Sequence record: NC_061421.1
DNA length: 64,000 bases
Direction: 5' to 3' (one strand)
The notes under the pieces: model-generated
Databases searched by the model: none
What the model was told of the DNA's origin: nothing
Seen by the model: the letters and a program-made list of their open reading frames with translations, nothing else
In this document: one piece after another, positions 9,682-58,646 of the stretch
Layout of the letters: each line of letters opens with the position of its first letter
How positions within the stretch are numbered: position 1 is the stretch's first letter
Translations under genes and position numbers: made by a program

Positions 9682-9689
9682 GTGATATA
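9682..9689 (-). promoter_or_regulatory. Putative early promoter motif TATATCAC
   Basis: Divergent intergenic region; context ACACCTATATCACT. Confidence 0.65.
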
Positions 9690-15692: not shown

Positions 15693-15827
15693 GTTAGGAT
15701 TCCTTAATTGGTTTAGTTAAACGGAAAGGTCTTTCCTTTCCTTATTCACTCTGGCTATATATACTTTAAAAAAAGTGCATTTCGATTCTTATGAATTTTC
15801 AACTGACTAATAAAGGCTGAGCGCTTT

Positions 15828-26519: not shown

Positions 26520-26527
26520 GTGATATA
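26520..26527 (-). promoter_or_regulatory. Putative early promoter motif TATATCAC
   Basis: Intergenic, just downstream of the NAMPT terminator. Confidence 0.65.
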
Positions 26528-26590: not shown

Positions 26591-28348
26591 TCAAATCCAT
26601 TGTGCCGCACGTTCACGGATAGTACGAATACTTTCCAGAATCTTCACATCGCCGTTCAGGTAAACTGTACGCATCGCGTCTCGCTCACTTCCGCGCAACG
26701 TTTCGTACTGCTCCCGAGTCAGATCGTCTTTCAGTGTTAGCGTTCCATCATCTTCACGATAGACAATCAGATACCCTTTTGCTGACTTCTTAGTACCGTC
26801 GTCAGTTTTAGGGTTCTTCGCGATGTTGTAGTGTTTACCGTTGACTTTACCGGCGGTTGCCTTCATGGCGATGCCCAGAGTGTCGCGAGTCACAAACTGG
26901 AACTCGAAACTCCCTACCCCAAAGACAACGTTAGAGCTACAGAATCCATTCTCTTTCAAACGGGAAAGGATCCGTGTCATGGTGTTGATGTTGATCGCAT
27001 CGCCATAGATCAAACCGACGTGCGGATCCAGCTCTTTATACCCAGCGGCATTTGTGGTTCCGCCGAAGATTTCCCAGAGTATCTGTACTGCACCCTTCTG
27101 CTCTTCGATAGAAATAGGTTTCCCTGTTTTAGTCGAATAGAATTGACCATCAACACAGAAAGATTCGAAATTACCAGACGTAGCATTTTGAATCGCGACA
27201 AATTTCGTAGCATCTAAAGCAGAAGCTCCCCCTAAAACGACCATCTCTTGGGAATTGTGATTATCGCCGTCCCAAGTGTATCCGCAGAGGATATGGTACG
27301 GATTCCCGGAATCTGGACGATAGACCAGTTTACCGTCACGCGCCATAATCGCATCTTTGTTTGCGATAGCTTTGGTGGTGATGGTGTCAAAGAAGTCATT
27401 CGTATCACTGACGAAGCTGAAAACGCCAGAAGGGTAAACTTCCGTGATCAGGCGTCGTTGGAATAATTCCTCCGCCTTCGAGAGTAACTCCGCTTCTGTG
27501 ACATTAGCGTATTCAGGGGTCGCCTTCAGCTCCTCTGCGTAAACTGCAATATTCAGACAGGTTACGCTGTGTTCTGTGGCTGGGACACTACCAGCGATTT
27601 CCGAGACCGATACGTCGCCTTCTGGATTATAGAAGCGATTCGCGGTCCAGACCGAAGGGAAGCTGTCGCTCCCTTTGAAATAGATCAGCTGACCTACTGA
27701 GCTGTTCGCATCGTCAAACATCCCCGACATTCCACGTAACGCGAAGTTATGTGCCTGGTAGTCAATGAACGCTTGCGCCGCACCCGTCTCGTTAGCGTAC
27801 TGCTCCAGTACACGGCGGAAGTGTAACGCTTTCGTTGCCAACACGCACGGTTTCCAGAGTTCGTTACTCCAGAGGTCTTCGAAGTAACCGGTCAGCCACC
27901 CAAAGCCGTCGACAGTGTTTTCAATCGTCAGGAATGGAACACGAATAGGGACTAATGACCCCTCCGGTACCGCACGAATTTCGAGCGGGATATAACCCAG
28001 TTCGTGCAGCTCTTTCAGATGCGTCGATTTCACCACGCCTTTACCCAGAACCCCGTCCATGTATTCGAGGTATTCAGCCTCTACCTGATTAAACGGCGTT
28101 TTGAAGAAGTTATCAAAACTCCCGACCAACCAGCGGAGCACTAAACGCTGCAGACCCATAAATACCGAACCGTCAAAGTCCAGTGGGGTATTGAAGTACG
28201 TGTGACTTCTGGCCGTCAGGTTTTCAAAGAAGCTGTCGGTACCCAGCGGTTGTTGGTTGATGTGCCCGGTTTTATAGGCGTCACAGAGCAGGAATACCAG
28301 CGGATCTTCGGTATAGAATTTTGGGTCTTTCAGTAAAGGATTGGTCAT
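26591..28348 (-). CDS. Nicotinamide phosphoribosyltransferase-like enzyme (candidate Namat of NARP1)
   Basis: DAYKTGH, HNFALRG, FKGSDS, SVPATEHSV, SFVSDT, YRPDSG, GLIYGDAI, FGVGS, TRDTLGIAMKAT, KNPKTDDGTKKSAKG. Confidence 0.95.
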   Translation of the reverse strand: MTNPLLKDPKFYTEDPLVFLLCDAYKTGHINQQPLGTDSFFENLTARSHTYFNTPLDFDGSVFMGLQRLVLRWLVGSFDNFFKTPFNQVEAEYLEYMDGVLGKGVVKSTHLKELHELGYIPLEIRAVPEGSLVPIRVPFLTIENTVDGFGWLTGYFEDLWSNELWKPCVLATKALHFRRVLEQYANETGAAQAFIDYQAHNFALRGMSGMFDDANSSVGQLIYFKGSDSFPSVWTANRFYNPEGDVSVSEIAGSVPATEHSVTCLNIAVYAEELKATPEYANVTEAELLSKAEELFQRRLITEVYPSGVFSFVSDTNDFFDTITTKAIANKDAIMARDGKLVYRPDSGNPYHILCGYTWDGDNHNSQEMVVLGGASALDATKFVAIQNATSGNFESFCVDGQFYSTKTGKPISIEEQKGAVQILWEIFGGTTNAAGYKELDPHVGLIYGDAININTMTRILSRLKENGFCSSNVVFGVGSFEFQFVTRDTLGIAMKATAGKVNGKHYNIAKNPKTDDGTKKSAKGYLIVYREDDGTLTLKDDLTREQYETLRGSERDAMRTVYLNGDVKILESIRTIRERAAQWI

Positions 28349-29208
28349 TTCACGCGTCCATCTTTAGCGGTTAAATAGGATTGGGTTGGTAACCCGTCGT
28401 CGGTGATGTTTTCCCACCACACGTTAGTCGAGAAAATCTGATCGAAGGCAGCGGAAAGCTCGCCTAGTCCTTTCGAGAAAATACCGTGAGTCACGAAGAG
28501 ACTGAGCGATTTCGGGCTCTGAGTACTGAGCTTTTTCGCCAGCTCAGTGAAGGTCCACCCACCATCGCAAATGTCATCAACAACCAACAGATTACGACCT
28601 TCGATATTGTCGTTGTCCAGTAGCGTAATGTCGAGGATATTGCCGGTTTTGGTATCGCGCTTTTTGTTTGCATAAACGATAGGCGCACCACCCAAGAGTT
28701 TCGCCAGCTCTTCAGTTTTCTTCGCAGCGCCACCGTCAGGGGAAACTAACACGACGTTATTCTCCCGAATCCAATTGGCCAGGAGATTAAAGACTATTTT
28801 GGACTGCTCCAGAACGACGAGGTTTTTGATCAGGGCCGGGGTGACGTTAGAGTGCGGATCGTGTATCAACACTCGGTCTGCTTTCAGGCTGTTGAACAGC
28901 TCTGCGAATACGCCGAGGGAGAACGATTCTCCTGCATTACACACGCGGTCTTGGCGTGCGTACGGGAAATACGGTACGGTTAAATGAAGTTCTGTTTTCG
29001 CCGTATATTTACCAATACGACGAATAGCATCGACCAGCAGCAGTAAGCGGACTGCCTCACTGGAAGATTTGATACTTCCTTCTATTTTAACGATACCAAT
29101 ATCGTGCGGAGGAAGACCGTGGCGATTAATTGCAATATGTTCTTCCCCGCCCGGGAACGTTAAGTTTTCATAAAGGACGGGTTGTCCATCGAACGTAACT
29201 TTAAACAT
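28345..29208 (-). CDS. Ribose-phosphate pyrophosphokinase-like enzyme (candidate Adps of NARP1)
   Basis: FPGGEEH, PYFPYARQDR, DPHS, SPDGGA, KKRD, VVDDICDGGWTF, THGIFS; GTGA overlap with NAMPT gene. Confidence 0.95.
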   Translation of the reverse strand: MFKVTFDGQPVLYENLTFPGGEEHIAINRHGLPPHDIGIVKIEGSIKSSSEAVRLLLLVDAIRRIGKYTAKTELHLTVPYFPYARQDRVCNAGESFSLGVFAELFNSLKADRVLIHDPHSNVTPALIKNLVVLEQSKIVFNLLANWIRENNVVLVSPDGGAAKKTEELAKLLGGAPIVYANKKRDTKTGNILDITLLDNDNIEGRNLLVVDDICDGGWTFTELAKKLSTQSPKSLSLFVTHGIFSKGLGELSAAFDQIFSTNVWWENITDDGLPTQSYLTAKDGRVK

Positions 29209-32037: not shown

Positions 32038-32760
32038 TTATTTAAACGCCGGGTGAAGTTTGATCACTTTCACTTCCGCAGCGAGAGCTTTGTCAGCTTT
32101 GGCTTCGGCGAGGTCGATGGCTTGCTGGAGGTTAACCCAGAATTCGACAGTGGTTTTGGTGGCTTTTGCCAGGCGGTAGGCGGTGCGGATGGTCAGTTTG
32201 GATTTACCGTCGAGCAGACGCGACAGCGTTGACGTTGCCAGGCCGATGTGTTTGGCGAAATCAGTCGGGGCGATACCAGCGGGTTCCAGGTACTCTTTCA
32301 GGAGAATTTCACCTGGAGTGGAGGGTTTGCGTGCTTTTGCCATTTTTTGGTATTCCTTTGGTTTATAAGGAGAAGTTAGTGGTGCGTTGTTACACAATAC
32401 TACTTCTTGACGTGAAAGATTACCCGGAAAGAGAATCGATCCGACGACGAAAATCTCTTGTTTTAAACCGTCCGGGGTATTACGGAACAGCGTAATCTGA
32501 TTTTTGTTTTTCGCCAGAAGATCGGTGAGTAGTTTCACGTAATAATCTGACGGGTTATCGAGATCGCGTAGCAGGAGAACCTCGGCTTCCGCGAAACTGA
32601 TCCTCTTCTCCTGCACTATCGACATTTGCAGCGGGAACTTCAGTTTATGGACCAGGATATCGTACGGTAACGAAATCACCTCTTTCGGATTATTCTCTTT
32701 ATCAAGAATATACCGATTGAGTTCTTCGTCTTTGATGTCTTTGTTCACGTAGTGAATCAT
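32038..32760 (-). CDS. Unknown N-terminal domain fused to HigA-family antitoxin HTH; probable internal start at 32343
   Basis: PSTPGEILLKEYLEP.GI...FAKHIG...LSRLLDGK..LT...AYRLAK..KTT.EFWVNLQ; AAGGA SD before Met140. Confidence 0.85.
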   Translation of the reverse strand: MIHYVNKDIKDEELNRYILDKENNPKEVISLPYDILVHKLKFPLQMSIVQEKRISFAEAEVLLLRDLDNPSDYYVKLLTDLLAKNKNQITLFRNTPDGLKQEIFVVGSILFPGNLSRQEVVLCNNAPLTSPYKPKEYQKMAKARKPSTPGEILLKEYLEPAGIAPTDFAKHIGLATSTLSRLLDGKSKLTIRTAYRLAKATKTTVEFWVNLQQAIDLAEAKADKALAAEVKVIKLHPAFK

Positions 32761-35497: not shown

Positions 35498-35505
35498 GTG
35501 ATATA
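35498..35505 (-). promoter_or_regulatory. Putative early promoter motif TATATCAC
   Basis: Lies in 15-mer ACGCCTATATCACTT, identical to the site at 55652-55666. Confidence 0.7.
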
Positions 35506-41143: not shown

Positions 41144-41209
41144 AGGTTATCCTCCCTGTCGTTTTTATTAAAAGTTGGTTCATAATCGAGTTACCAAACT
41201 AAAAAATAA

Positions 41210-41236
41210 ATTGAGGGGATCCGAAGACCCCCTCAA
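41210..41236. terminator. Terminator hairpin
   Basis: ATTGAGGGG / CCCCTCAAT, with U tract on the minus strand. Confidence 0.65.
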
Positions 41237-41239
41237 TCG

Positions 41240-41713
41240 TTAATTTACCAAATAGAAGATAACGTCTTCAGCGAGCGTAAAGTTGGTGAGTAGGGATTCA
41301 TAAGTCTTGTCCCGACGTACGCGGCTAAAATAAAAATACGCTTCGTCTACGTAAACGTGCGTAATGGGATGTTTTCGGTACGCAGCGGTATAACCCTGTT
41401 CGTACGGTTTTCCGACGATGACCCTTAAGTCTTGCGGTATTACCCCAGCGTTACGCGTAAACCGAGACAAAAGTTCTTCTTTCATTTCACTCGTCGGGAA
41501 TAAGATGAGTGAGTGGGCAGGGTCTTTTTTAGCCCGTGAAAATATCCATTCGGTCTTTCCTGTTTGCCGCGTTGCAGTAAAGCCAATAGTGCGACACTCC
41601 CGAAGTAAAATCGGTCGCCGCCAATCACAACGTTTGGCCTGCTCAGAATTCTCTGAGATAAGCGTCTTTTCTAATACCTGCGCAATTGATTCAAAATCGT
41701 TTTTATTTGCCAT
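41240..41713 (-). CDS. Small P-loop NTPase domain protein
   Basis: TRQTGKT Walker A and HVYVDEA Walker B. Confidence 0.7.
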   Translation of the reverse strand: MANKNDFESIAQVLEKTLISENSEQAKRCDWRRPILLRECRTIGFTATRQTGKTEWIFSRAKKDPAHSLILFPTSEMKEELLSRFTRNAGVIPQDLRVIVGKPYEQGYTAAYRKHPITHVYVDEAYFYFSRVRRDKTYESLLTNFTLAEDVIFYLVN

Positions 41714-41731
41714 GGTGTATTTTGCCTTTTG

Positions 41732-42067
41732 TTACAGTGAATGGAACCAACCTTCATTATCTGGTTCCGAAGAAAACTCAAAGTTCACAAACTCTTTCCC
41801 TTTTGCAAACTCTGCAAAGGTATCCGTACCAATCCAAAATCCCCGGCGTTTCAACTCATATTGGTCGCCATTTAAACGAAAAGATACTTTCCCTTCATTA
41901 GCGTCAAACTCCGCGTCAATCCATTCGCCATCAGTCATTCCTTTAAACGCAGACGTAAAACGAAAGAAGCCTGACTTATACAGACTACCGATTAGTTTCC
42001 CGCCTCGTGAATTACCAATATTTTTTGGCGTAGAAAGAAAACGAAGGTTGTTTAAATCTAACTTCAT
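41732..42067 (-). CDS. Hypothetical protein
   Basis: Start moved to MKLDL. Confidence 0.65.
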   Translation of the reverse strand: MKLDLNNLRFLSTPKNIGNSRGGKLIGSLYKSGFFRFTSAFKGMTDGEWIDAEFDANEGKVSFRLNGDQYELKRRGFWIGTDTFAEFAKGKEFVNFEFSSEPDNEGWFHSL

Positions 42068-42078
42068 TTCCTCTCCCC

Positions 42079-42405
42079 TCAATCAAGAAACTCTATTGAA
42101 AAAGTCCCTTCTTCTCGATTATAACCCACGAAAAAACGGACACCATTGGCTTTCAAGATATTACTCAAGGCAACAACCGCGGTTGTCGAATCGTCGCGGC
42201 CAAACAACGGGTTTGAAATCGTATTCTGTAATTCCCAGAAAGGGTCACCCGATTTCTTTTTTCGTTTCCACCGAGAACGAAAGGTAACCGGTTGTTTTTG
42301 CCAAAGGTATAACGGTCCTTTATTCGTTTGGACTGTCAACGAACGAATAAAGGTTGCGTCCGTATATTCTTTGCCAAATAGAAACGTTTTTATTTTTTCC
42401 AACAT
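42079..42405 (-). CDS. Hypothetical protein
   Basis: 108-aa ORF. Confidence 0.6.
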   Translation of the reverse strand: MLEKIKTFLFGKEYTDATFIRSLTVQTNKGPLYLWQKQPVTFRSRWKRKKKSGDPFWELQNTISNPLFGRDDSTTAVVALSNILKANGVRFFVGYNREEGTFSIEFLD

Positions 42406-42639
42406 TTATAGCTCCTTAGAAACAGATTTCGTCAGTGTCTGAATTTGCTCCAGAACACAGAGGTCGTTTTGAATAGATTCGACACTGATACCGTAGAAAT
42501 GCGCTATTTCCTCAGTGCGCATTCCGTTCTTGACGCCTTGTTGAATGAGTTTAGCAATACTCGGATTTTCTATCTTTGCGAGTAGCGCGTCGAAGTTGTT
42601 GAGGTAATCCTTATACGCGTTACGATCCATTAGAAACAT
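42406..42639 (-). CDS. Small HTH protein
   Basis: GMRTEEIAHFYGISVESIQ. Confidence 0.6.
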   Translation of the reverse strand: MFLMDRNAYKDYLNNFDALLAKIENPSIAKLIQQGVKNGMRTEEIAHFYGISVESIQNDLCVLEQIQTLTKSVSKEL

Positions 42640-43009
42640 CCTTTAAACGGCTTCTGGCAATGTCAGACCAACCGTGTTCACGAAAAAGACGGTCTAAAGT
42701 GGCGCTATACTCGTTTATCTTTGCCTGCAGCTCAATAGCCTCTGCAATTTTAACAGGGTCGTCAGGAATCAGAAAATCTTCTCTGATCAAAAACCAACCA
42801 GATAGCCCCTCTATTTTGACGACGAGGGAGTCAGGTAGCCCGACTCTTTTAACTCCGGGTACCCGATCGACTTCTTTAAAAACTTTCGTTACAAAAGGCG
42901 TAATATTAATAGCCTTTATACCCGTCCAGGTTTTACCAATTTTTCTTACTTTGGAAATCGTATCAGTGACGATAACTTTGTTCATAATCTTTTCCTCTTT
43001 ACTCGCCAT
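42620..43009 (-). CDS. Hypothetical protein
   Basis: 129-aa ORF. Confidence 0.6.
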   Translation of the reverse strand: MASKEEKIMNKVIVTDTISKVRKIGKTWTGIKAINITPFVTKVFKEVDRVPGVKRVGLPDSLVVKIEGLSGWFLIREDFLIPDDPVKIAEAIELQAKINEYSATLDRLFREHGWSDIARSRLKDVSNGS

Positions 43010-43011
43010 TA

Positions 43012-43455
43012 CTATTTCCTCACCTGAATACTATTAACCCACTTCTCATCCTCAGTTATTGGATAGAACTCCGTCGTTTTAATTTTACCGATTAAAGATA
43101 ACCAACGTAAATACGTTTCATCATCTACAAATAAAACCGCATTTTTTCTTTGATTAAATTCATCAGGGATTACCCTACTAATCCCACGCGTAGGAAACGG
43201 AAGAGATTTGATTAACCGCCGTTGGTTAACTTCAATCTTTACTTGTTCTATACCTCGCGAAGCTTCGTCGACCGTTGGGATATAACCAGTTTCAGCCTGA
43301 ACAAACGGTTTTATTTCAGGGCGATCAAAGTATCTGAGGCGTTCTTGCTTCGTCCAGTTTACTTTTCGATCTAGAAAAGCAATAATCGATTTGTCAGTAA
43401 AACCGAGAATAAATCCTAATCTAGTGCAATGGCGTAAATTACCCAGATTTAACAT
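43012..43455 (-). CDS. Hypothetical protein
   Basis: 147-aa ORF with TAATG overlap and GGAGG SD. Confidence 0.6.
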   Translation of the reverse strand: MLNLGNLRHCTRLGFILGFTDKSIIAFLDRKVNWTKQERLRYFDRPEIKPFVQAETGYIPTVDEASRGIEQVKIEVNQRRLIKSLPFPTRGISRVIPDEFNQRKNAVLFVDDETYLRWLSLIGKIKTTEFYPITEDEKWVNSIQVRK

Positions 43456-44453
43456 TACACCTCCTTATTCAACCCAGAAACGATAGTGGCGCGGATCCAT
43501 TTGAATTTCAGCTTTCGTACCCCGTTGACAACAGGACCGACCCAATACCCATGCCAATGGGCACGGCGAATATGCGCTGCTCTTCCGTAAGTCTTTTGTC
43601 CTTTCTTTCGCTTCTCCATTTCTTCCAGGTAATCAAACCCTACTGGAAACTTACGATGCGCATTCAGGAAACGCAAGCTGTAGTGTTTACCCGAACGTTT
43701 CATTTTGGTTAAACGAAAGGTGTTACGGAAATCAGCAGCGTCTTGCTGGTCATATTCCTGCGCGACGAATAAAGCCACATTTAACAGCTTCGTGTACGTT
43801 TCACGATAACCGTCACGCATGAGAATACCTGCCGCCTCTTCTGCGTCAAGGTTGTGCTCCTTCGCAGCACGAACAATCGTAGGGTCAGAAGCAATGACTT
43901 CTTCCAACGTCAACCCTTCATCGAACGGAAAGAAGAGCGTTTGCGGGAATCCACCGTCGTTATACGGGTAGACGATAGTCAACCCTTCTTTCCCGCTCCA
44001 ATGTGTAACCGTGGAGAGGAAAATCCCTTCAATGAGCGGTTCCTCCGGGAGTGGGTGCTTGATAGGGCAAGCTGAAAGGTCGACGTACCCCGTCCAATGA
44101 GGAATGGTTTTCAGAACGGTTAGCGGCAATTTACCGTTGAACTCGGAGTCCAGCACATCTGCCAATAATTCAGAAGGGATTTGATATTCCGGTTTCGTGA
44201 TTTGCCAGCAGTAGGTCATACTCGCGTGCCAGAACATTTCCCGGTAGTATGGATTACTGAAATCGATTCCCTTTGGGAACCCTTTATTTTCACCCCATAT
44301 TTCCAATGGGTAAAAATACGGTGGGATTTCCCCTTTCGTTTCCGTAAGGATGCGATTGAAGAAATCTTTTGCGTCCCACGCCCTCAAGCGCGGGAGTAAG
44401 GTTTTTTCTACGGTTTCAAGAATGTTCACGGAATCTTTTCTCCATTCCTTCAT
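43455..44453 (-). CDS. AcrVA2/FinQ-family protein
   Basis: WQIT...YQI...LP......IPHWTGYVDLS core and C-terminal HIRRAHWHGYWVG...KW; colinear with my recollection of AcrVA2; alternative GTG start at 44429. Confidence 0.72.
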   Translation of the reverse strand: MKEWRKDSVNILETVEKTLLPRLRAWDAKDFFNRILTETKGEIPPYFYPLEIWGENKGFPKGIDFSNPYYREMFWHASMTYCWQITKPEYQIPSELLADVLDSEFNGKLPLTVLKTIPHWTGYVDLSACPIKHPLPEEPLIEGIFLSTVTHWSGKEGLTIVYPYNDGGFPQTLFFPFDEGLTLEEVIASDPTIVRAAKEHNLDAEEAAGILMRDGYRETYTKLLNVALFVAQEYDQQDAADFRNTFRLTKMKRSGKHYSLRFLNAHRKFPVGFDYLEEMEKRKKGQKTYGRAAHIRRAHWHGYWVGPVVNGVRKLKFKWIRATIVSGLNKEV

Positions 44454-44979
44454 CTACGTGCCAACAAAACAGAGAGAAAAAATGCTCTTCCATAGATTGC
44501 GGCAATAATGAGAAATTAGCGGGAGTGACGATATTGTATTTTTTCTTGTTCGATAGAGCGACGATAAAATGACTCTTGGTAACTCTAACCGAAACAATCT
44601 CGTGGCCATACATCTTATTAATTTGTTTGCCATCTCTTATTCGGAGCCCGACAATTCCTTGCCCTATGCGTAATCCATTTTTAGAGGAAGGAACAATCCA
44701 GTCCCCTTGACGATTTTTGAAGAAATTCCACCAAAGACTCACCGGGATAAACCAATGAGCATCTTTAAGATTTCTTCCCGTATGATAAGAGATAGCCTCG
44801 TACATTTCCTTTTGCGTTAAAGTCGTCCCCTCTTGGTCAGGGGTATTTATTTTTACTCCCATTTTTTCAGAGTAAACAAACATGATGATAGAGTTATCGC
44901 GAAGAAATAAATTTTCGCTTACCCACTTACCATACTCTATCTCTAACTCAAGAACTTTTTCTGCTGTACTCTTTTCCAT
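44416..44979 (-). CDS. Hypothetical protein
   Basis: 187-aa ORF. Confidence 0.65.
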   Translation of the reverse strand: MEKSTAEKVLELEIEYGKWVSENLFLRDNSIIMFVYSEKMGVKINTPDQEGTTLTQKEMYEAISYHTGRNLKDAHWFIPVSLWWNFFKNRQGDWIVPSSKNGLRIGQGIVGLRIRDGKQINKMYGHEIVSVRVTKSHFIVALSNKKKYNIVTPANFSLLPQSMEEHFFSLFCWHVDEGMEKRFREHS

Positions 44980-45005
44980 TTTTTACCCGATCAGTGCTAA
45001 TTACA

Positions 45006-45194
45006 TTAGACGTCTAACGTGGGGTTCCACCAAGTAGCAAGTCTGTCCAAATCTTTGACCACTTTGGCAGCCTGCCTTGCCGGGATACGGTACTTTCTGG
45101 CTACCCGGCGTTTTGCGCTTTGTACAGTAGTCATGCAGGTGGAAAGGTCGTAGGTGACCAAGTTATCTATTTTCTTGCGTAAAGATTCTTTCAT
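45006..45194 (-). CDS. Small basic protein
   Basis: 62-aa ORF with GGAG SD. Confidence 0.6.
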   Translation of the reverse strand: MKESLRKKIDNLVTYDLSTCMTTVQSAKRRVARKYRIPARQAAKVVKDLDRLATWWNPTLDV

Positions 45195-45210
45195 TTTATT
45201 ACTCCTTTAA

Positions 45211-45486
45211 TCATTTATCGTTAATGATAACGAATGGATCATTACTTTTTTCTAATACTTGCTTACGTGTGTATAGCGTGGGATCGAAGTTAGACACCGA
45301 TACGTATACGCCGTTGCCGAAATCGGCATAGCAGCCATCACTGTAAATAACCTCTACATCACTGTATAACTTTGCGCGAAGTTTACATTGCTCGATTTCT
45401 TTTTCTTTCTTCGCGGACAATAGATACGGAGTGAATCCTAGCATCACAACAACAGCTACCCCTAAGAAAATAATTAATTTATTCAT
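45211..45486 (-). CDS. Membrane-anchored protein
   Basis: N-terminal hydrophobic helix; two Cys. Confidence 0.6.
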   Translation of the reverse strand: MNKLIIFLGVAVVVMLGFTPYLLSAKKEKEIEQCKLRAKLYSDVEVIYSDGCYADFGNGVYVSVSNFDPTLYTRKQVLEKSNDPFVIINDK

Positions 45487-45746
45487 TACATTTTTCCTTT
45501 AATGGTTTGGTATAACCGATCGAGGTTGTCACTGATGAGTTTCCCACGCGAAATAGTAATCGGCTTAGTCCTTGAATCGTAAAAGGTTATTTCTAATACG
45601 ACGAACGGAATCGTCCCGAGCCGCCCTTTAAAACTACGGTCTACAATAGACCGCCGAATCGTTTTAATATCGCGAATGAATAAGCAATAATAATTTTCTC
45701 CGTCAGTAATATCCACTTTCCCATTAAGTACCGTAAAGTTTGGCAT
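45486..45746 (-). CDS. Hypothetical protein
   Basis: 86-aa ORF with TAATG overlap. Confidence 0.6.
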   Translation of the reverse strand: MPNFTVLNGKVDITDGENYYCLFIRDIKTIRRSIVDRSFKGRLGTIPFVVLEITFYDSRTKPITISRGKLISDNLDRLYQTIKGKM

Positions 45747-45755
45747 AGTTTTCTC

Positions 45756-46079
45756 TTAGTGAAATAATTCGATTAAAGGAACGGTAACAGACAGAGTTTT
45801 TTTCGGTTTATTTCTGTGGTTTCCAACGCCAAAAGCCCTTAGTTTAACGCTGTCTTCCGTGTGGAAACGAAGCGACTGTAAATCCAGTAACATTCTTTCG
45901 ACAGCCCGCTCATTAGCTCTCGACCAAGTCAGAGTCGCAACGGTCTGACCGTTAAGAAGAGTTTCAAGACAAACTTGGTAAGAGTATTCCTTTTTTATAT
46001 TTTCTTTAACTATTTGCTCAATAGCGACTATCAGCCCCTGAAAAGCAGGAACCTCTTCTAAGCGAGGAACGCGTTTCAA
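45756..46079 (-). CDS. Hypothetical protein
   Basis: 107-aa ORF with TTG start. Confidence 0.55.
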   Translation of the reverse strand: MKRVPRLEEVPAFQGLIVAIEQIVKENIKKEYSYQVCLETLLNGQTVATLTWSRANERAVERMLLDLQSLRFHTEDSVKLRAFGVGNHRNKPKKTLSVTVPLIELFH

Positions 46080-46081
46080 GC

Positions 46082-46588
46082 TTAACCTCCGTAACTGTTA
46101 TCGAAACCAAAAGACGTCCCCTCGATAACGAGAATGACTTTACTTTCCGGCGGATAAATAACATCCAGCGCCGATCTGATTTCTTCGTTCACGTTAAATC
46201 TGGCTTTAATGCAACCACAGATATTTTTCATTAATTCCTTACTTTTATTTTCATTGAGCATAATTCGAACAATGAGATCGGCGTCATCGTCAATAGATGC
46301 TTGCGTCTCAATCCCATCGGTTTCCACGTTATATTCGAAGCGAACGTTGTCCGCCGAAACGTTATGAACACTAAAACCTTCTGGTACCGTATGGTATTCT
46401 ACGCCAGACGAAATTAGCGCGACAATTTTCTCGATTTCATTGCGAGAGATTTTACAAACTTCCGCCTTTAAACGCTCAATGGCTTCTTTTTCACTGTTTC
46501 GGTGTTTTTGAATAGCGTCAAGAGCCATAGGGGAAGAAACGAAACTTTTGATCACTTCTGCGATTTTTGACGGTTCAGTGGATTTCAT
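46082..46588 (-). CDS. Hypothetical protein
   Basis: 168-aa ORF, first after a promoter motif. Confidence 0.7.
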   Translation of the reverse strand: MKSTEPSKIAEVIKSFVSSPMALDAIQKHRNSEKEAIERLKAEVCKISRNEIEKIVALISSGVEYHTVPEGFSVHNVSADNVRFEYNVETDGIETQASIDDDADLIVRIMLNENKSKELMKNICGCIKARFNVNEEIRSALDVIYPPESKVILVIEGTSFGFDNSYGG

Positions 46589-46651: not shown

Positions 46652-46659
46652 GTGATATA
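46652..46659 (-). promoter_or_regulatory. Putative early promoter motif TATATCAC
   Basis: Intergenic, downstream of terminator 46687-46714. Confidence 0.65.
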
Positions 46660-46686
46660 GACTTTAAATGTAATCGAAACAAAAAA

Positions 46687-46714
46687 TAAAAGAGGGGCAT
46701 CTGCCCCTCTTTTA
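46687..46714. terminator. Terminator hairpin
   Basis: TAAAAGAGGGGC-atct-GCCCCTCTTTTA. Confidence 0.8.
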
Positions 46715-46724
46715 TAGCGTTACC

Positions 46725-48029
46725 TTAGTTCAGTTTCCTGCGCTCCTGTACGACAATCTCCCCTTCTTTCAGGTAGATTTTCTTACGCGGTTTACGCAGG
46801 GCTTTCGCCAGCGAGATGTTTTCTGAAGGCGTGACTTCGAAAGCCGGGAGTCCAGCAGCAGCGCGAGCCTCAATGGCTTCCATCGGTGTAAGCAGACGGA
46901 AATGTAATGGTTCCCCCATGTAATGACGACCATCACGCATTAACGCCGGTTCGATCTGAGTTTTGTCAGTCAGGTTAGTGGTGATGATCATTTTACGTGT
47001 AATAGCGCTTCCTACGCCATCGGTTTCGTTCAGCAGTTCAGCCATCATTTCGTTACCATGGCTACGTGGTGCGATCAGAAGATCACCGTCTTCTACGATA
47101 ATCACCGGGAATGCGGGTTCTTTCCTTTTTACCCCAATTTCTACAGTGGGAAGATTAGGTTGAGTTGCCATCTGGTCAAATATTTTACGCTCTTTAAACA
47201 AAACATCGCGGCCTGCGCCGTTAATGACCTGCGCTTTCTCCATGTAATTGTCACTGAAGTTGAAGATAGAAGAAATGAAATCTTTGTATTCGATCACTTC
47301 CTTTTTCTTCACGTAGATCGGCATGAGATTCAGCGCTGTGGCCGCAGAAGAAATAGCCGTGGATTTCCCGGTACCGGGTTCGCCCATCAGGATCAGTACT
47401 GTTTCATCGGAAGCGATAAAGTCTTCGATGAGGTTAACAATCCCACCGTCAAGGTAGGGGTAAAATGCGTTGTGAGTATGGCCAGAGTGCTGAATTTCCT
47501 TTTTCTTCAACCCCAATCCCTCACCAAACATATTTTTCTCAATGACGGTCTCGTAATAGTAACGACTGTCGTCTTTTGGCGGCTCCGTCGTGTCAAGTTT
47601 GATGTTTTCACGGACAGCCGCCCATAAGGCGTCATAGAGATCTTTTGACAGAATACCAGAGAATTGCAGTAGCGTCTTCTCCCCGCCAAGCACACGAAGA
47701 AAACCGACAGGGCGATTGTAGCGGTCCAACGCGATAAACTGGTCGTCGTCGTACTGAAAGAAACCGTGTTTTTCCAGGAATACGGAAACCCACTGTGTTT
47801 CCGAGAAGTAGTGGATAGACGCGTTTATGTAGTCGCTGGAATCAAGACCAAAAATTGGTAATTGATTGGCGGCCAGAAAGTGACGCACCATATTTTTTGG
47901 AGAGAGCTCATCATTATCGTTGCCGACCAATGCAGCGAATGCATCATAAGCCTCAGCGAATGAATCAAAAACGTCATTCAGTAATTTGTGAGAGCGAGTG
48001 AGATTTGCTACAGCATTAGAATAAGACAT
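46725..48029 (-). CDS. AAA+ ATPase
   Basis: GEPGTGKS, IIVEDGD, LLNETDG, ITTN, ALMRDGR. Confidence 0.9.
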   Translation of the reverse strand: MSYSNAVANLTRSHKLLNDVFDSFAEAYDAFAALVGNDNDELSPKNMVRHFLAANQLPIFGLDSSDYINASIHYFSETQWVSVFLEKHGFFQYDDDQFIALDRYNRPVGFLRVLGGEKTLLQFSGILSKDLYDALWAAVRENIKLDTTEPPKDDSRYYYETVIEKNMFGEGLGLKKKEIQHSGHTHNAFYPYLDGGIVNLIEDFIASDETVLILMGEPGTGKSTAISSAATALNLMPIYVKKKEVIEYKDFISSIFNFSDNYMEKAQVINGAGRDVLFKERKIFDQMATQPNLPTVEIGVKRKEPAFPVIIVEDGDLLIAPRSHGNEMMAELLNETDGVGSAITRKMIITTNLTDKTQIEPALMRDGRHYMGEPLHFRLLTPMEAIEARAAAGLPAFEVTPSENISLAKALRKPRKKIYLKEGEIVVQERRKLN

Positions 48030-48085: not shown

Positions 48086-48093
48086 GTGATATA
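48086..48093 (-). promoter_or_regulatory. Putative early promoter motif TATATCAC
   Basis: 57 nt upstream of the AAA gene. Confidence 0.65.
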
Positions 48094-50954: not shown

Positions 50955-52199
50955 TTACCCCTTCACGCAGACTATTTGTTTCAACGTAAAAAGAACTTCC
51001 ACGAGATCGTCTTGCGAACGCATTACATCGTCAATGTTCTTATACGCTTTTGGTGTTTCATCGATGACATCTTTGTCTTTGCGGCATTCGACGCCTTCAG
51101 TGTCACGTATTTGATCTTCTACTGTGAAGACACGTTTTGCTTCTCCACGGGACATCAGACGACCGGCGCCATGGGAACACGAGCAGAATGATTCTGAATT
51201 CCCTTTCCCGCGTACCACAAATGTTTTTGCACCCATCGACCCGGGAATAATAGCGAGATCGGTTGTCCTGGCTCTGACCGCCCCTTTACGGGTAACAAGG
51301 ACGTTTTGATCAAAGTGATTTTCCAGCGCAACGTAGTTATGATGACAATTGATGGCGGTCACTTTATTCTCGAAGGGTTTTTGTAAAACCTTATGCAGCG
51401 CAATCAGTGTTGCATTGAGCATAATGGCGCGGTTTACAGCCGCGAAGTCCTGTGCCCATTGCACAGCTTCTAGGTAGTCTTTGTAGTAGACCGACCCTTC
51501 CGGTAAATAAGCCAGGTCGTCATCAACTAAATGGATAAAGAAACGCGCCATTTCTTCCTTTGCTTTCTCAATGAAGAAACGACCAATTGCGTTACCTATA
51601 CCGCGAGAACCGGAATGAATTACTATCCAAAGTGAGTCATTCTGGTCGAGTGATAATTCAACAAAATGATTGCCGCTACCCAACGTTCCTGCGTGTGAAG
51701 CAAAACGGTTCGCGTTACGTAACAGAGTAGGGTATTTATCAGTGATGAACTTCAAGCGATTCTCTAATGAGACTAACTCGGCTTTAAGCTGTAGCGTTAA
51801 GTTTTGAGGGTCATTATTACCCCACGCTCCCCGGTCGTTCGGCCCACCGTTATCGGTACGGCCATGGGGGATGAGTTGTTCAATCGCGCTACGAATACCG
51901 GAAAGATCTGTTGGTAAGTCCTCGCGTTTTAACGATGTCTGTTGACCCACCAACCCGCAACCAATGTCAACACCAAGCGCAGCAGGAATAATGGCCCCCT
52001 TTGTTGCAATGACAGAACCTATTGTCGCACCCATCCCCCAGTGGACATCGGGCATGACTGCGATATGCTTGAAGATAAACGGTAAGGTAGTGAGGTTATG
52101 AAGTTGTTTTTCTGCCTGCTCTTCCACTGGGACAAATTTTGTCCAAGATTTAATGTTGACTTTGTCACCTTTAATAAAAACAATATTTGAATCTGACAT
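50955..52199 (-). CDS. rtcB: RtcB RNA ligase (tRNA repair)
   Basis: MPDVHWG, GVDIGCG, GTLGSGNHFVE, HSGSRG, HHNY, RKGA, PGSMG, SHGAGR, DETPKAYK. Confidence 0.97.
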   Translation of the reverse strand: MSDSNIVFIKGDKVNIKSWTKFVPVEEQAEKQLHNLTTLPFIFKHIAVMPDVHWGMGATIGSVIATKGAIIPAALGVDIGCGLVGQQTSLKREDLPTDLSGIRSAIEQLIPHGRTDNGGPNDRGAWGNNDPQNLTLQLKAELVSLENRLKFITDKYPTLLRNANRFASHAGTLGSGNHFVELSLDQNDSLWIVIHSGSRGIGNAIGRFFIEKAKEEMARFFIHLVDDDLAYLPEGSVYYKDYLEAVQWAQDFAAVNRAIMLNATLIALHKVLQKPFENKVTAINCHHNYVALENHFDQNVLVTRKGAVRARTTDLAIIPGSMGAKTFVVRGKGNSESFCSCSHGAGRLMSRGEAKRVFTVEDQIRDTEGVECRKDKDVIDETPKAYKNIDDVMRSQDDLVEVLFTLKQIVCVKG

Positions 52200-55318: not shown

Positions 55319-55657
55319 ATGAATATGAGACTGGACGACGGTATTCTAACTTTCTTTTGCCCGGGTTGCGAGACCACCCATTCTGTTTCGGTCGAACCAA
55401 CTGACCCTTGTTACTGGACGTGGAATGGGTCGTTAGAGAAACCAACGTTATCTCCGAGTGTTTTGACCCGCTCCGGTCATTACGTGGACGGTAGTCATGG
55501 TTGCTGGTGTAACTATTATACCGCGCACCCGGAAGAAGAAGTTGTCTTTAAGTGTTATCGCTGCCACAGCTTTATCCGCGACGGCAATATTGAATTCCTT
55601 TCTGACTGCAGCCATAAATTGGCAGGGCAGACTGTTCCTTTAGATCCATTAAAGTGA
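55319..55657 (+). CDS. DUF6527-like Cys/His metal-binding protein
   Basis: FFCPGCETTH...WTWNGSLEKPTLSPSVL...RCHSFIRDGNIEFLSDCSHKLAGQTVPL. Confidence 0.75.
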   Translation: MNMRLDDGILTFFCPGCETTHSVSVEPTDPCYWTWNGSLEKPTLSPSVLTRSGHYVDGSHGCWCNYYTAHPEEEVVFKCYRCHSFIRDGNIEFLSDCSHKLAGQTVPLDPLK

Positions 55658-55661
55658 TATA
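55654..55661 (-). promoter_or_regulatory. Putative early promoter motif TATATCAC overlapping the stop codon of the plus-strand gene
   Basis: 15-mer identical to the site at 35496-35510. Confidence 0.6.
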
Positions 55662-55704: not shown

Positions 55705-57096
55705 CTAACCCACTTTTTTCATAGTAGAATAACTGACCGCTTCCACGGGTTTAGTGACATCATATTCCCGCAAGGCAATTTCAAAGGTCTCAGGGCTATG
55801 TTTATTTAACATGAACAACGCCTGTACTGAGGCACCCGGTAAAGGCGGGAAAGGAACTGGACTACGGGGTTCTGCATCAGGAAACGCCATTTTGAAGAAG
55901 CGGCGAATCTCTTTGTCCCCCAGAACTTCAACCTCTACACGAATGTCAATTCTACCATCCCTTAGAATTGCATCGTCCAGTTTCTCAGGGTGATTCGTGG
56001 TCAAGAACACAATGACATCATTCAGACGCATTACGCCATCTAGTGCGTTGAGGAAATCAGACAAACTCCCATTCAGGTATTCGTCCATTGCCTTGTCGTC
56101 TGATTTCGTTTCTTCTAATGTCCCCGGTACCCCGTGAGGCATTTCGATAACATTCAACCCAGACGACTCTTTTTCCTTTTCTTTTAATTCAACTATTGTC
56201 TTTTCTTTACTGCGTGCTTTCGTAAAAGAGTAAGTATCAATATCCTCGATGATGACAACACCACCCGCCGCGCGCTGGAATAATGCCTGATATTGTAATC
56301 CGCCGCTCGGTTTAAGGGTATGAATGTTACGACCTAAAGCCCCAGCCAGTGCGGAAATAAGACTGCTCTTACCAGTGCCAGGTAGCCCATAAAGTAATAC
56401 TGTAAATTTATAAGGTAATCCCCGCGAATGGTACCACTCTTTACTCCGACTAAATTCAAAGACGGGTTCAATCAATCCTTTTTGTACATTATCAGTAACA
56501 ACAATAGTGTCCAGGCTCCGCTTAGGGAGACGGCAGAGGTATTCCCAATTGGCGGTATTGTTGACAAATGCACCGACTGTATTTTTAGTGTCACTTTTCA
56601 CCATGAACGCATCCATCAGTTCGAGTATTGCCTTATGGCTTCGCCCAAACTTACTGATACTCAACCGGTATTTAGAAGCATTAGACGCATTGGCGTCTAT
56701 TTCAATGATTTTAAATACAAAGAGCGTACCGCGATAGAAAAAGAAATGAGAACCCACACCCGGACCTACCGCGCCGTCCGTCCCACTACTTTCCCCATCG
56801 ATAGTAATCGTTCTGCTCCAGTGAAACCAACTGTTCAATGAGAACCAATTAAGGAAGGCAGTGTACTGCTCTGAGTTATAATTAGTCCAGTTGGTGCTGG
56901 CAGTATTGAAAATCAAACTGGTAACGAATTGCCTTTTAACCCACTGAATCACCGCTTTGGGGGTTTTGATTAAACCCCAACCGATTGCGCCTGAGACAGC
57001 TAAAGAACTCGCAGTAACAATCGCGTTCTGTGCCATGGGGTAATCTTTAAAGTTAGACAATATATGGTCGTAAAACGACATTAGCTGTTCAAGCAT
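55705..57096 (-). CDS. BCS1-like membrane-anchored AAA ATPase
   Basis: N-terminal TM; GPGVGSHFFFYRG; RLSISKFGRS; PKRSLDTIV; KEWYHSRGLPYK..LLYGLPGTGKSS; IEDID; LNALDG; TTNHPEKLDDAILRDGRID. Confidence 0.88.
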   Translation of the reverse strand: MLEQLMSFYDHILSNFKDYPMAQNAIVTASSLAVSGAIGWGLIKTPKAVIQWVKRQFVTSLIFNTASTNWTNYNSEQYTAFLNWFSLNSWFHWSRTITIDGESSGTDGAVGPGVGSHFFFYRGTLFVFKIIEIDANASNASKYRLSISKFGRSHKAILELMDAFMVKSDTKNTVGAFVNNTANWEYLCRLPKRSLDTIVVTDNVQKGLIEPVFEFSRSKEWYHSRGLPYKFTVLLYGLPGTGKSSLISALAGALGRNIHTLKPSGGLQYQALFQRAAGGVVIIEDIDTYSFTKARSKEKTIVELKEKEKESSGLNVIEMPHGVPGTLEETKSDDKAMDEYLNGSLSDFLNALDGVMRLNDVIVFLTTNHPEKLDDAILRDGRIDIRVEVEVLGDKEIRRFFKMAFPDAEPRSPVPFPPLPGASVQALFMLNKHSPETFEIALREYDVTKPVEAVSYSTMKKVG

Positions 57097-58172: not shown

Positions 58173-58646
58173 TTAACCCTCAAACCGATAGACGATAATT
58201 TCAAAATCAGTATCCGAAAAAACCCGCTTGATATTTTCACTCACGCGCTCCCAGTCACCACCTGCTAACCCGCACCCCAATAGAGGGAAACCGACTTTTA
58301 AAACCCTCCCTTCCTTTTTCAGGATAGAGGCCATTAGTTTCAACGCCAGATAAAGAGCAGCGTAATGGGTTTTATAGTCAGGGTGCGAATGTTCGTGATG
58401 AAATTGACCACAAAGGTTGAAGCCCCATTGATTCCCATTCTTAGCAGCAGTTAATTTCCCCAAGCGTTTGTTGTAAGGGCGCTTATCGGAAAAGTAAGAT
58501 TCCGCTAACCAAGGCAATGCTTCGAATATTTTAACAGCAATACCGCTCTTAGCGACCCCAAAGCAATTGACTTGGTGGGCTATGACGTCAACTTCCTTAT
58601 TAAGAAAGGCTTCAATCAAATCCCCTTTTATTTCAGTGTATTTCAT
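58173..58646 (-). CDS. Macrodomain (ADP-ribose binding / hydrolase) protein
   Basis: KGDL, IAHQVNCFGVAKSGIA, FPLLGCGLAGGDW. Confidence 0.92.
   Translation of the reverse strand: MKYTEIKGDLIEAFLNKEVDVIAHQVNCFGVAKSGIAVKIFEALPWLAESYFSDKRPYNKRLGKLTAAKNGNQWGFNLCGQFHHEHSHPDYKTHYAALYLALKLMASILKKEGRVLKVGFPLLGCGLAGGDWERVSENIKRVFSDTDFEIIVYRFEG

Follow-up and report, generated by a model that had tools for sequence, protein, structure and literature searches.

The gp218 locus of Klebsiella phage vB_KpM_FBKp24

The stretch of DNA analyzed here, 64,000 nucleotides of sequence record NC_061421.1 (referred to below as the window), is a long arm of the genome of Klebsiella phage vB_KpM_FBKp24 (FBKp24), a strictly lytic jumbo myovirus with a genome of 307,210 bp (MW394391). 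Its genes lie mostly on the minus strand and are largely annotated as hypothetical. One of them, gp218, is the subject of this study, and our sequence comparisons and structure prediction place its product in the AcrVA2/FinQ family. Window coordinates equal MW394391 coordinates minus 124,000, and the region from 42000 to 46000 of the window is 100% identical to MW394391. The positions of all features discussed are collected in Table 1.

The open reading frame (ORF) described in a first-pass annotation of the window is intact and contains all of the sequence blocks quoted from it, but the start chosen there, an ATG at 44453 that gives 332 residues, had to be corrected. The GenBank record, which labels the product "hypothetical," begins gp218 at a GTG at 44429, giving 324 residues. 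The eight residues added by the in-frame ATG are not conserved, and the N terminus falls at the position of GTG-44429 in all six database relatives (44 to 92% identity to gp218). At the homologous position, Centimanus, KpLz-2_45, and one metagenomic relative start with ATG, MJ359 with GTG, and two further relatives with TTG; in KpLz-2_45, a different upstream gene terminates directly 5' of this codon. A GGAG lies 10 nucleotides upstream of GTG-44429, and a Shine-Dalgarno sequence was looked for 5' of ATG-44453 and not found. These comparisons indicate that the true start of gp218 is most likely the GTG at 44429, and residues are numbered below according to the 324-residue form.

gp218 is related to AcrVA2 over its entire length

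The protein encoded in the window served as the sole query, and AcrVA2 was reached only as a named match. When the single sequence of gp218 was compared with all Protein Data Bank (PDB) chains using phmmer, AcrVA2 (7ci1, 323 residues) was retrieved with an E value of 3.4e-6 through two colinear stretches, approximately residues 74 to 123 and 274 to 317. A profile of gp218's own phage clade lowered the E value to 4.3e-11. With a profile of 40 family members, built from the matches of an exhaustive HMMER search with the clade profile, it fell to 2.8e-42 and the alignment became a single stretch, pairing positions 15 to 323 with chain residues 13 to 318. The clade profile likewise aligned with distant relatives in one stretch, from 21 to 321.

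The predicted structure led to the same protein. An AlphaFold2 model of gp218, obtained with the family alignment as input, had a mean predicted local distance difference test score (pLDDT) of 89.2 and a predicted template modeling score (pTM) of 0.88. In a Foldseek search of the PDB, the top three matches of this model were AcrVA2 chains (E values of 1.9e-11 to 1.8e-10, probability of 1.0), with template modeling (TM) scores of 0.53 to 0.59 over approximately 340 aligned columns; the match with the best E value had TM scores of 0.57/0.59. The next PDB match had an E value of 0.1. A DnaK substrate-binding domain appeared at E values of 0.1 to 0.5 with a probability of at most 0.1 and a TM score of 0.1, and was discarded as noise. 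AcrVA2 is thus the sole significant match of gp218 among solved structures, both by sequence and by fold. The first-pass annotation had proposed a full-length AcrVA2/FinQ homolog, and the comparison bears this out: rather than being limited to the C-terminal motif, the similarity takes the form of a single-stretch profile match and a whole-fold match. On profile and model evidence together, gp218 is a true full-length protein of the AcrVA2/FinQ family.

Residues required for AcrVA2 activity are retained in gp218

According to mutational data on AcrVA2 (Marino et al., bioRxiv 10.1101/2022.11.29.518452), H286A, R288A, and H291A abolish knockdown of the target while binding is kept; the effect of D89A is moderate, and that of W79A is weaker binding or lower stability. 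After allowing for one extra N-terminal residue in the PDB chain of 7ci1, H286, R288, H291, and W79 of AcrVA2 align with H286, R288, H291, and W75 of gp218. Conservation of these positions among 150 distant relatives is nearly complete (H286, 100%; R288, 99%; H291, 100%; W75, 96%), as is that of H293 (98%), W296 (95%), G298 (99%), and W311 (98%). Across the family, conservation peaks at gp218 residues 281 to 300 and is lowest at residues 1 to 60 and 181 to 200.

The protein can be divided into three parts. The N-terminal helical region (residues 1 to 78) cannot be aligned to FinQ, shows a raised ratio of nonsynonymous to synonymous substitution rates (dN/dS) of 0.17 within the clade, and ends at the near-invariant Trp75. 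The central alpha/beta body would, by analogy with AcrVA2, be the peptide-binding part, and it is followed by a basic beta domain that carries the signature motif. Charge is unevenly distributed, with residues 71 to 200 being acidic (isoelectric point [pI] of 4.3 to 4.6) and the last 124 residues basic (pI above 10). The basic C-terminal third would fit a ribosome-binding C-terminal part, as has been reported for AcrVA2.

Relatives of gp218 in phages and on plasmids

Word-based protein searches gave only 6 and then 9 proteins, and the extent of the family was seen through the exhaustive HMMER search, which found 1,935 cluster representatives at E values of 0.001 or lower and 280 at 1e-10 or lower. 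Most members are 310 to 360 residues long, and many matched in a single stretch from approximately residue 20 or 70 to approximately residue 322. gp218 matches PHROG 6160, a group of phage proteins of unknown function, over nearly its whole length (E value of 2e-35). Homologs are present in at least 83 phage records, mostly of 235- to 307-kb phages of Erwinia, Klebsiella, Dickeya, Salmonella, and Escherichia coli, and the predicted structures of phage homologs superimpose on the gp218 model with TM scores of 0.54 to 0.85. Relatives of gp218 at 44 to 92% identity carry a precomputed match to Pfam PF26125, "AcrVA2-like." The copy of Pfam-A that was used yielded no match for gp218 or 40 family members, some of them with the precomputed match; the PF26125 model is apparently missing from that copy, and the absent Pfam match of gp218 therefore does not count as a negative. 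A scan of NCBIfam gave no match for gp218 or the 40 members.

Phage homologs are annotated inconsistently, as "putative protein FinQ" in Special G, as "putative mycothiosynthase" in RisingSun, and otherwise as hypothetical. The protein with the second label, RisingSun gp126 (L003:5935-6936; "putative mycothiosynthase" in both GenBank and UniProt), has a TM score of 0.69 to the gp218 model, and its label looks wrong for a protein of the AcrVA2 family. In the Erwinia phages Special G and RisingSun, the homologs lie among genes unrelated to those around gp218, and the gp218-type neighborhood is not shared beyond the close lineage.

Plasmids also carry members of the family. A tblastn search with gp218 found relatives on 493 plasmid records, 438 of them conjugative and 17 from Klebsiella. 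Many of these matches are annotated as finQ and cover residues 76 to 320 with E values of 5e-4 to 3e-8. In an hhalign comparison, a FinQ-labeled protein from an Enterobacter plasmid matched the family profile over columns 76 to 327 (probability of 99.9, E value of 2.2e-35); the N-terminal 75 residues of gp218 do not align to FinQ.

Homologs of this kind have been reported before. Marino et al. described AcrVA2 homologs on plasmids and megaphages, typically in the absence of Cas12a, and proposed that they may act in the same way on other targets; earlier, proteins of the AcrVA2 cluster had been noted among huge phages by Al-Shayeb et al. (2020), and an AcrVA2 homolog has been described in a Shewanella phage. 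The suggestion in the first-pass annotation that a knockdown of this kind by a jumbo phage would be undescribed is therefore not supported. What is new is the placement of gp218, left unannotated in its GenBank record, in an already described family; the paper on the virion structure of FBKp24 does not mention it, and the terms "mass spectrometry," "proteome," and "nucleus" are absent from that paper's text.

Selection, gene order, and transcription of the gp218 region

gp218 is under strong purifying selection, with pairwise dN/dS values of 0.04 to 0.15 among FBKp24, Centimanus, MJ359, and KpLz-2_45. By region, the values are 0.15 to 0.17 at both ends of the gene and 0.01 to 0.05 in the middle. 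Metagenomic relatives at 44 to 50% identity keep the place of gp218 within a syntenic arm (AAA ATPase, gp220, gp218, gp215, gp213, gp211, gp210, and gp206, in this order) while its immediate neighbors change, gp219, gp217, gp216, and gp214 not being conserved in these genomes.

Within FBKp24, gp218 is the largest gene of a unit that runs from gp224 to gp212. Only 2 of the 13 genes of this unit, gp218 and gp212 (PHROG 2586, unknown function), have family matches. Intrinsic terminator hairpins close both this unit and the one upstream, and a promoter-like motif, TATATCAC, lies between the upstream terminator and gp224. Seven exact copies of the motif occur in the window against 1.7 expected, a number reached in none of 100 shuffles. 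Each of the seven is oriented with the coding strand and lies between genes, upstream of a gene block, in several cases just after a terminator hairpin; after the motif come a Y, a few further bases, and a TG that is conserved. In phiKZ-like phages, extended AT-rich promoters are used by the virion RNA polymerase, with transcription starting six bases downstream. Judging from its sequence and placement, TATATCAC is probably a promoter for a phage RNA polymerase.

The overlap of gp218 with gp219 (187 residues, without a family match) includes the GTG start, an arrangement that suggests translational coupling. The gp219-gp218 pair is common to Centimanus and MJ359. KpLz-2_45 has other genes in place of gp219, and the relatives at 44 to 50% identity lack it, which rules out gp219 as an obligate partner of gp218. 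A search for a conserved partner among the neighbors of gp218 found none, and PADLOC returned nothing meaningful for gp218, gp219, or gp217.

Table 1 Features of the gp218 region and of the window
Feature	Window coordinates	Strand	Remarks
gp218 ORF, longest form	43455..44453	minus	intact, 332 residues from first ATG
gp218, likely real gene	43455..44429	minus	324 residues, 37.6 kDa; record 167455-168429
N-terminal helical region, residues 1-78	44196..44429	minus	most variable across the family, gap share 0.17-0.38
Central alpha/beta body, residues 79-264	43638..44195	minus	family-wide P102, P110, W112, G135, L220, G264
Basic C-terminal beta domain, residues 265-324	43458..43637	minus	pI 10.4; best-conserved family block
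Signature motif, residues 286-298	43536..43574	minus	His286, Arg288, His291, His293, Trp296, Gly298
gp219/gp218 overlap	44416..44429	minus	14 nucleotides, including the GTG start
Transcription unit gp224 to gp212	41240..46588	minus	13 tightly packed genes, all annotated hypothetical
Intrinsic terminator hairpin	46686..46715	minus	13 pairs plus T run; closes upstream unit with AAA ATPase gp225
Intrinsic terminator hairpin	41209..41238	minus	13 pairs plus T run; closes gp224-gp212 unit
Promoter-like motif TATATCAC	46652..46659	minus	between upstream terminator and gp224
Exact copies of TATATCAC	526-533, 9682-9689, 26520-26527, 35498-35505, 46652-46659, 48086-48093, 55654-55661	minus	
Variant of TATATCAC	15754-15761		
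Nicotinamide phosphoribosyltransferase and ribose-phosphate pyrophosphokinase	26591-29208	minus	adjacent; GenBank annotation
RtcB-type RNA ligase	50955-52199	minus	GenBank annotation
Macro-domain protein	58173-58646	minus	GenBank annotation
HigA-family antitoxin-like helix-turn-helix protein	32038-32760	minus	GenBank annotation
(p)ppGpp synthetase/hydrolase	1-494	minus	GenBank annotation
AAA-family ATPase gp225	46725-48029	minus	ends just before terminator
AAA-family ATPase gp239	55705-57096	minus	ends just before terminator

Other genes of the arm

The arm that carries gp218 includes several accessory genes, namely, those for nicotinamide phosphoribosyltransferase (NAMPT) with phosphoribosyl pyrophosphate (PRPP) synthetase, RtcB, a macro-domain protein, and a HigA-like protein. 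Judging from their annotations, the NAMPT/PRPP synthetase pair could rebuild NAD+ and is a candidate counter to NAD-depleting defense systems, and the RtcB, macro-domain, HigA-like, and (p)ppGpp genes look like functions of host takeover or counter-defense. The AAA ATPase gp225 has a 41% identical counterpart beside the AcrVA2-like gene of one metagenomic relative (L007), and in PADLOC gp225 gave faint matches to ATPase domains only.

Possible mechanism and target of gp218

The activity that gp218 may have is suggested by AcrVA2. According to published accounts (Marino et al. and an editorial on this work, whose publication is given as Nature 2026), AcrVA2 binds the first 30 residues of nascent Cas12a, requires that the target be translated, and brings about loss of the not-yet-translated 3' part of the Cas12a message, with cas12a reads reported to fall away beyond roughly the first 100 codons. 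AcrVA2 associates with ribosomes via its C-terminal part, and it recruits a cellular enzyme rather than cutting the mRNA itself. Because the fold, the C-terminal motif, and the tryptophan are kept, we infer an AcrVA2-like mechanism for gp218, and we assign a probability of roughly 0.6 to the reading that it is a functional member of the family, associated with ribosomes and directing a nascent-chain-guided mRNA knockdown against a target other than Cas12a.

Under this model, the gp218 message would be translated in the cytoplasm, and the basic C-terminal beta domain of the protein, with its His-x-Arg-x-x-His motif, would dock onto translating ribosomes. The acidic body would bind a short stretch near the N terminus of one specific nascent protein. 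A cellular RNase would then be recruited and the untranslated 3' part of the target mRNA destroyed, so that the target protein would never be made. The target would most probably be a protein of the host, of a plasmid, or of a prophage that antagonizes the phage from the cytoplasm, against which the phage nucleus offers no shield.

Two premises of the first-pass annotation are relevant to the choice of target, and both are supported. For the phage nucleus, the paper describing FBKp24 reports genes for gp083, a nucleus shell protein, and gp094, a tubulin; papers cited there report that such nuclei exclude DNA-cutting CRISPR nucleases. The likely host is a species in which Cas12a has not been reported. 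A survey of 520 Klebsiella pneumoniae genomes found types I-E and IV-A3, its review text lists I-E, I-F, and IV-A, and no type V CRISPR-Cas system appears in literature surveys of K. pneumoniae, a statement that rests on these surveys and not on a genome scan for cas12a. With types I-E, I-F, and IV-A as the only ones reported for the host, and with a phage nucleus, the most likely target would be not Cas12a but an antagonist in the cytoplasm whose gene belongs to the host, to a plasmid, or to a prophage. The candidates would be forms of RNA- or translation-directed immunity that the phage nucleus cannot block. That gp218 silences, via its nascent chain, a cytoplasmic defense protein of non-CRISPR type from one of these three sources is a tentative proposal to which we would give somewhat less than even odds. 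The first-pass annotation had gone further and named a different host protein as the probable target; a target other than Cas12a is sensible, but preference for a host protein over one from a plasmid, a prophage, a rival phage, or the phage itself is unsupported.

Several observations weigh against the proposed mechanism. In the structural alignment with AcrVA2, identity is just 14 to 16% and the root mean square deviation is 6.7 to 7.0 Å. In the pairwise alignment, D89 of AcrVA2 falls opposite a proline of gp218, acidic residues following two positions further on, and no confident counterpart could be mapped in gp218 for the acidic residues with which AcrVA2 holds the Cas12a 620-636 peptide. 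The neighborhood gives no functional clue, as none of 10 neighboring proteins matched Pfam and the 1 that matched PHROG has an unknown function; the accessory genes of the arm are only suggestive of an anti-defense setting. Our literature search found no publication on the function of jumbo-phage AcrVA2 homologs. Finally, FinQ, the only other relative that has been characterized, was described as acting through Rho-independent transcription termination of the F tra operon, a description that has not since been revisited, and the mechanism may therefore not be uniform across the AcrVA2/FinQ family.

Alternative functions

The closest precedent would make gp218 a true anti-Cas12a anti-CRISPR, kept through occasional encounters with type V-A hosts or plasmids, since the one member whose target has been proven is homologous to gp218 over its full length and gp218 has all of the essential residues. 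We regard this as highly improbable. Apart from the lack of reports of type V systems in K. pneumoniae, the nucleus shell already protects the phage DNA from DNA-cutting CRISPR nucleases, the family is mostly found without Cas12a, and the N-terminal and body regions, which are expected to give specificity, are the least conserved parts of a protein that is only 14 to 16% identical to AcrVA2. In addition, neither an aca-like helix-turn-helix gene nor another acr gene was found among the 10 neighbors scanned with Pfam and PHROG. It is also very unlikely that the fold has been kept while the activity differs, with gp218 being a peptide or RNA binder that blocks by binding alone or a His/Arg enzyme acting on RNA. 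The published accounts consulted do not settle the molecular role of the motif in AcrVA2, and the differing description of FinQ would suit such a divergence, but binding alone does not make AcrVA2 inhibitory, AcrVA2 reportedly does not cut mRNA itself, and retention of the motif residues in 98 to 100% of the relatives sampled suggests one shared activity.

Two further possibilities concern the target rather than the fold. gp218 might act like FinQ in conflicts between mobile elements, lowering transfer or other operons of coresident conjugative plasmids or of rival elements. The homology of FinQ-labeled plasmid proteins from residue 76 to the end and the many conjugative plasmids with relatives, including those of Klebsiella, are in keeping with this idea, and conflict between mobile elements is the general role that Marino et al. 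give the family. It nevertheless seems unlikely to us: gp218 is only 20 to 26% identical to FinQ, its first 75 residues are unalignable, and a block on plasmid transfer would bring no obvious benefit to a jumbo phage that is strictly lytic. Its mechanism would equal that of the knockdown proposed above, from which it differs in the kind of target alone. Alternatively, gp218 could regulate the phage's own program or shut off a housekeeping protein of the host, for example, by silencing a host factor or a protein of the early phage program when the need for it has passed. Its conservation across the relatives at 44 to 50% identity, which is about that of its core-like neighbors, and its very low dN/dS would fit a stable target better than an arms race. 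This, too, we consider doubtful, as patchy occurrence in phages and abundance on plasmids is the pattern of an accessory gene and not of a core regulator, and such a role is known for no family member.

Silencing by gp218 of a cytoplasmic defense protein of non-CRISPR type, if true, would provide the first identified target of this kind for the AcrVA2 family and would mean that nucleus-forming phages combine physical shielding of their DNA with target-specific, cotranslational knockdown in the cytoplasm. The existence of gp218 is in itself unsurprising, given that many jumbo phages and hundreds of plasmids carry homologs and that the idea of other targets has been published. AcrVA2 is the first bacterial example in which recognition of a nascent chain leads to destruction of the mRNA under translation, and a single target, Cas12a, is known for its family of approximately 1,900 sequence clusters. 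A second target could reasonably be sought with FBKp24, a cultured phage that has a known laboratory host, a homolog that is intact and well conserved, and a host species without Cas12a. Such a target would reveal how specificity is encoded and what a nucleus-forming phage must still neutralize in the cytoplasm.

Comparison with known systems

The nearest analog of the AcrVA2 mechanism, according to Marino et al., is tubulin autoregulation in mammalian cells, in which a nascent N-terminal peptide is read and the translated mRNA decays; it belongs to another domain of life, no homology with the AcrVA2 family is claimed or was found, and the likeness is one of analogy alone. The phage homologs grouped in PHROG 6160 and PF26125 belong to the same family as gp218; their annotations vary, and their gene neighborhoods are not shared beyond the close lineage.

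FinQ, the fertility inhibition protein of IncI1 and F-like plasmids such as R820a, is a member of gp218's family with the same C-terminal motif. Its action ends in the loss of a specific transcript, that of the F tra operon, and is in this respect akin to an AcrVA2-type knockdown. FinQ is plasmid borne, 361 residues long in the copy compared, and unrelated to gp218 in its N-terminal region, whereas gp218 lies in a 307-kb lytic phage genome and not on a conjugative plasmid.

AcrVA2 itself (PDB 7CI1 and 7CI2) is encoded by a Moraxella bovoculi prophage and targets Cas12a, whereas gp218 comes from a jumbo phage that is strictly lytic and forms a nucleus, and in the host species of this phage Cas12a has not been reported. 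An acrVA1-like partner or aca gene was not found near gp218, and D89 of AcrVA2 is unmatched in the pairwise alignment. Despite these differences, the two proteins are nearly equal in length (322 and 324 residues), alike in their three-part architecture, and colinear at the profile level over their full length; gp218 has a conserved counterpart of W79, and the His-x-Arg-x-x-His motif stands at the same residue numbers in both.

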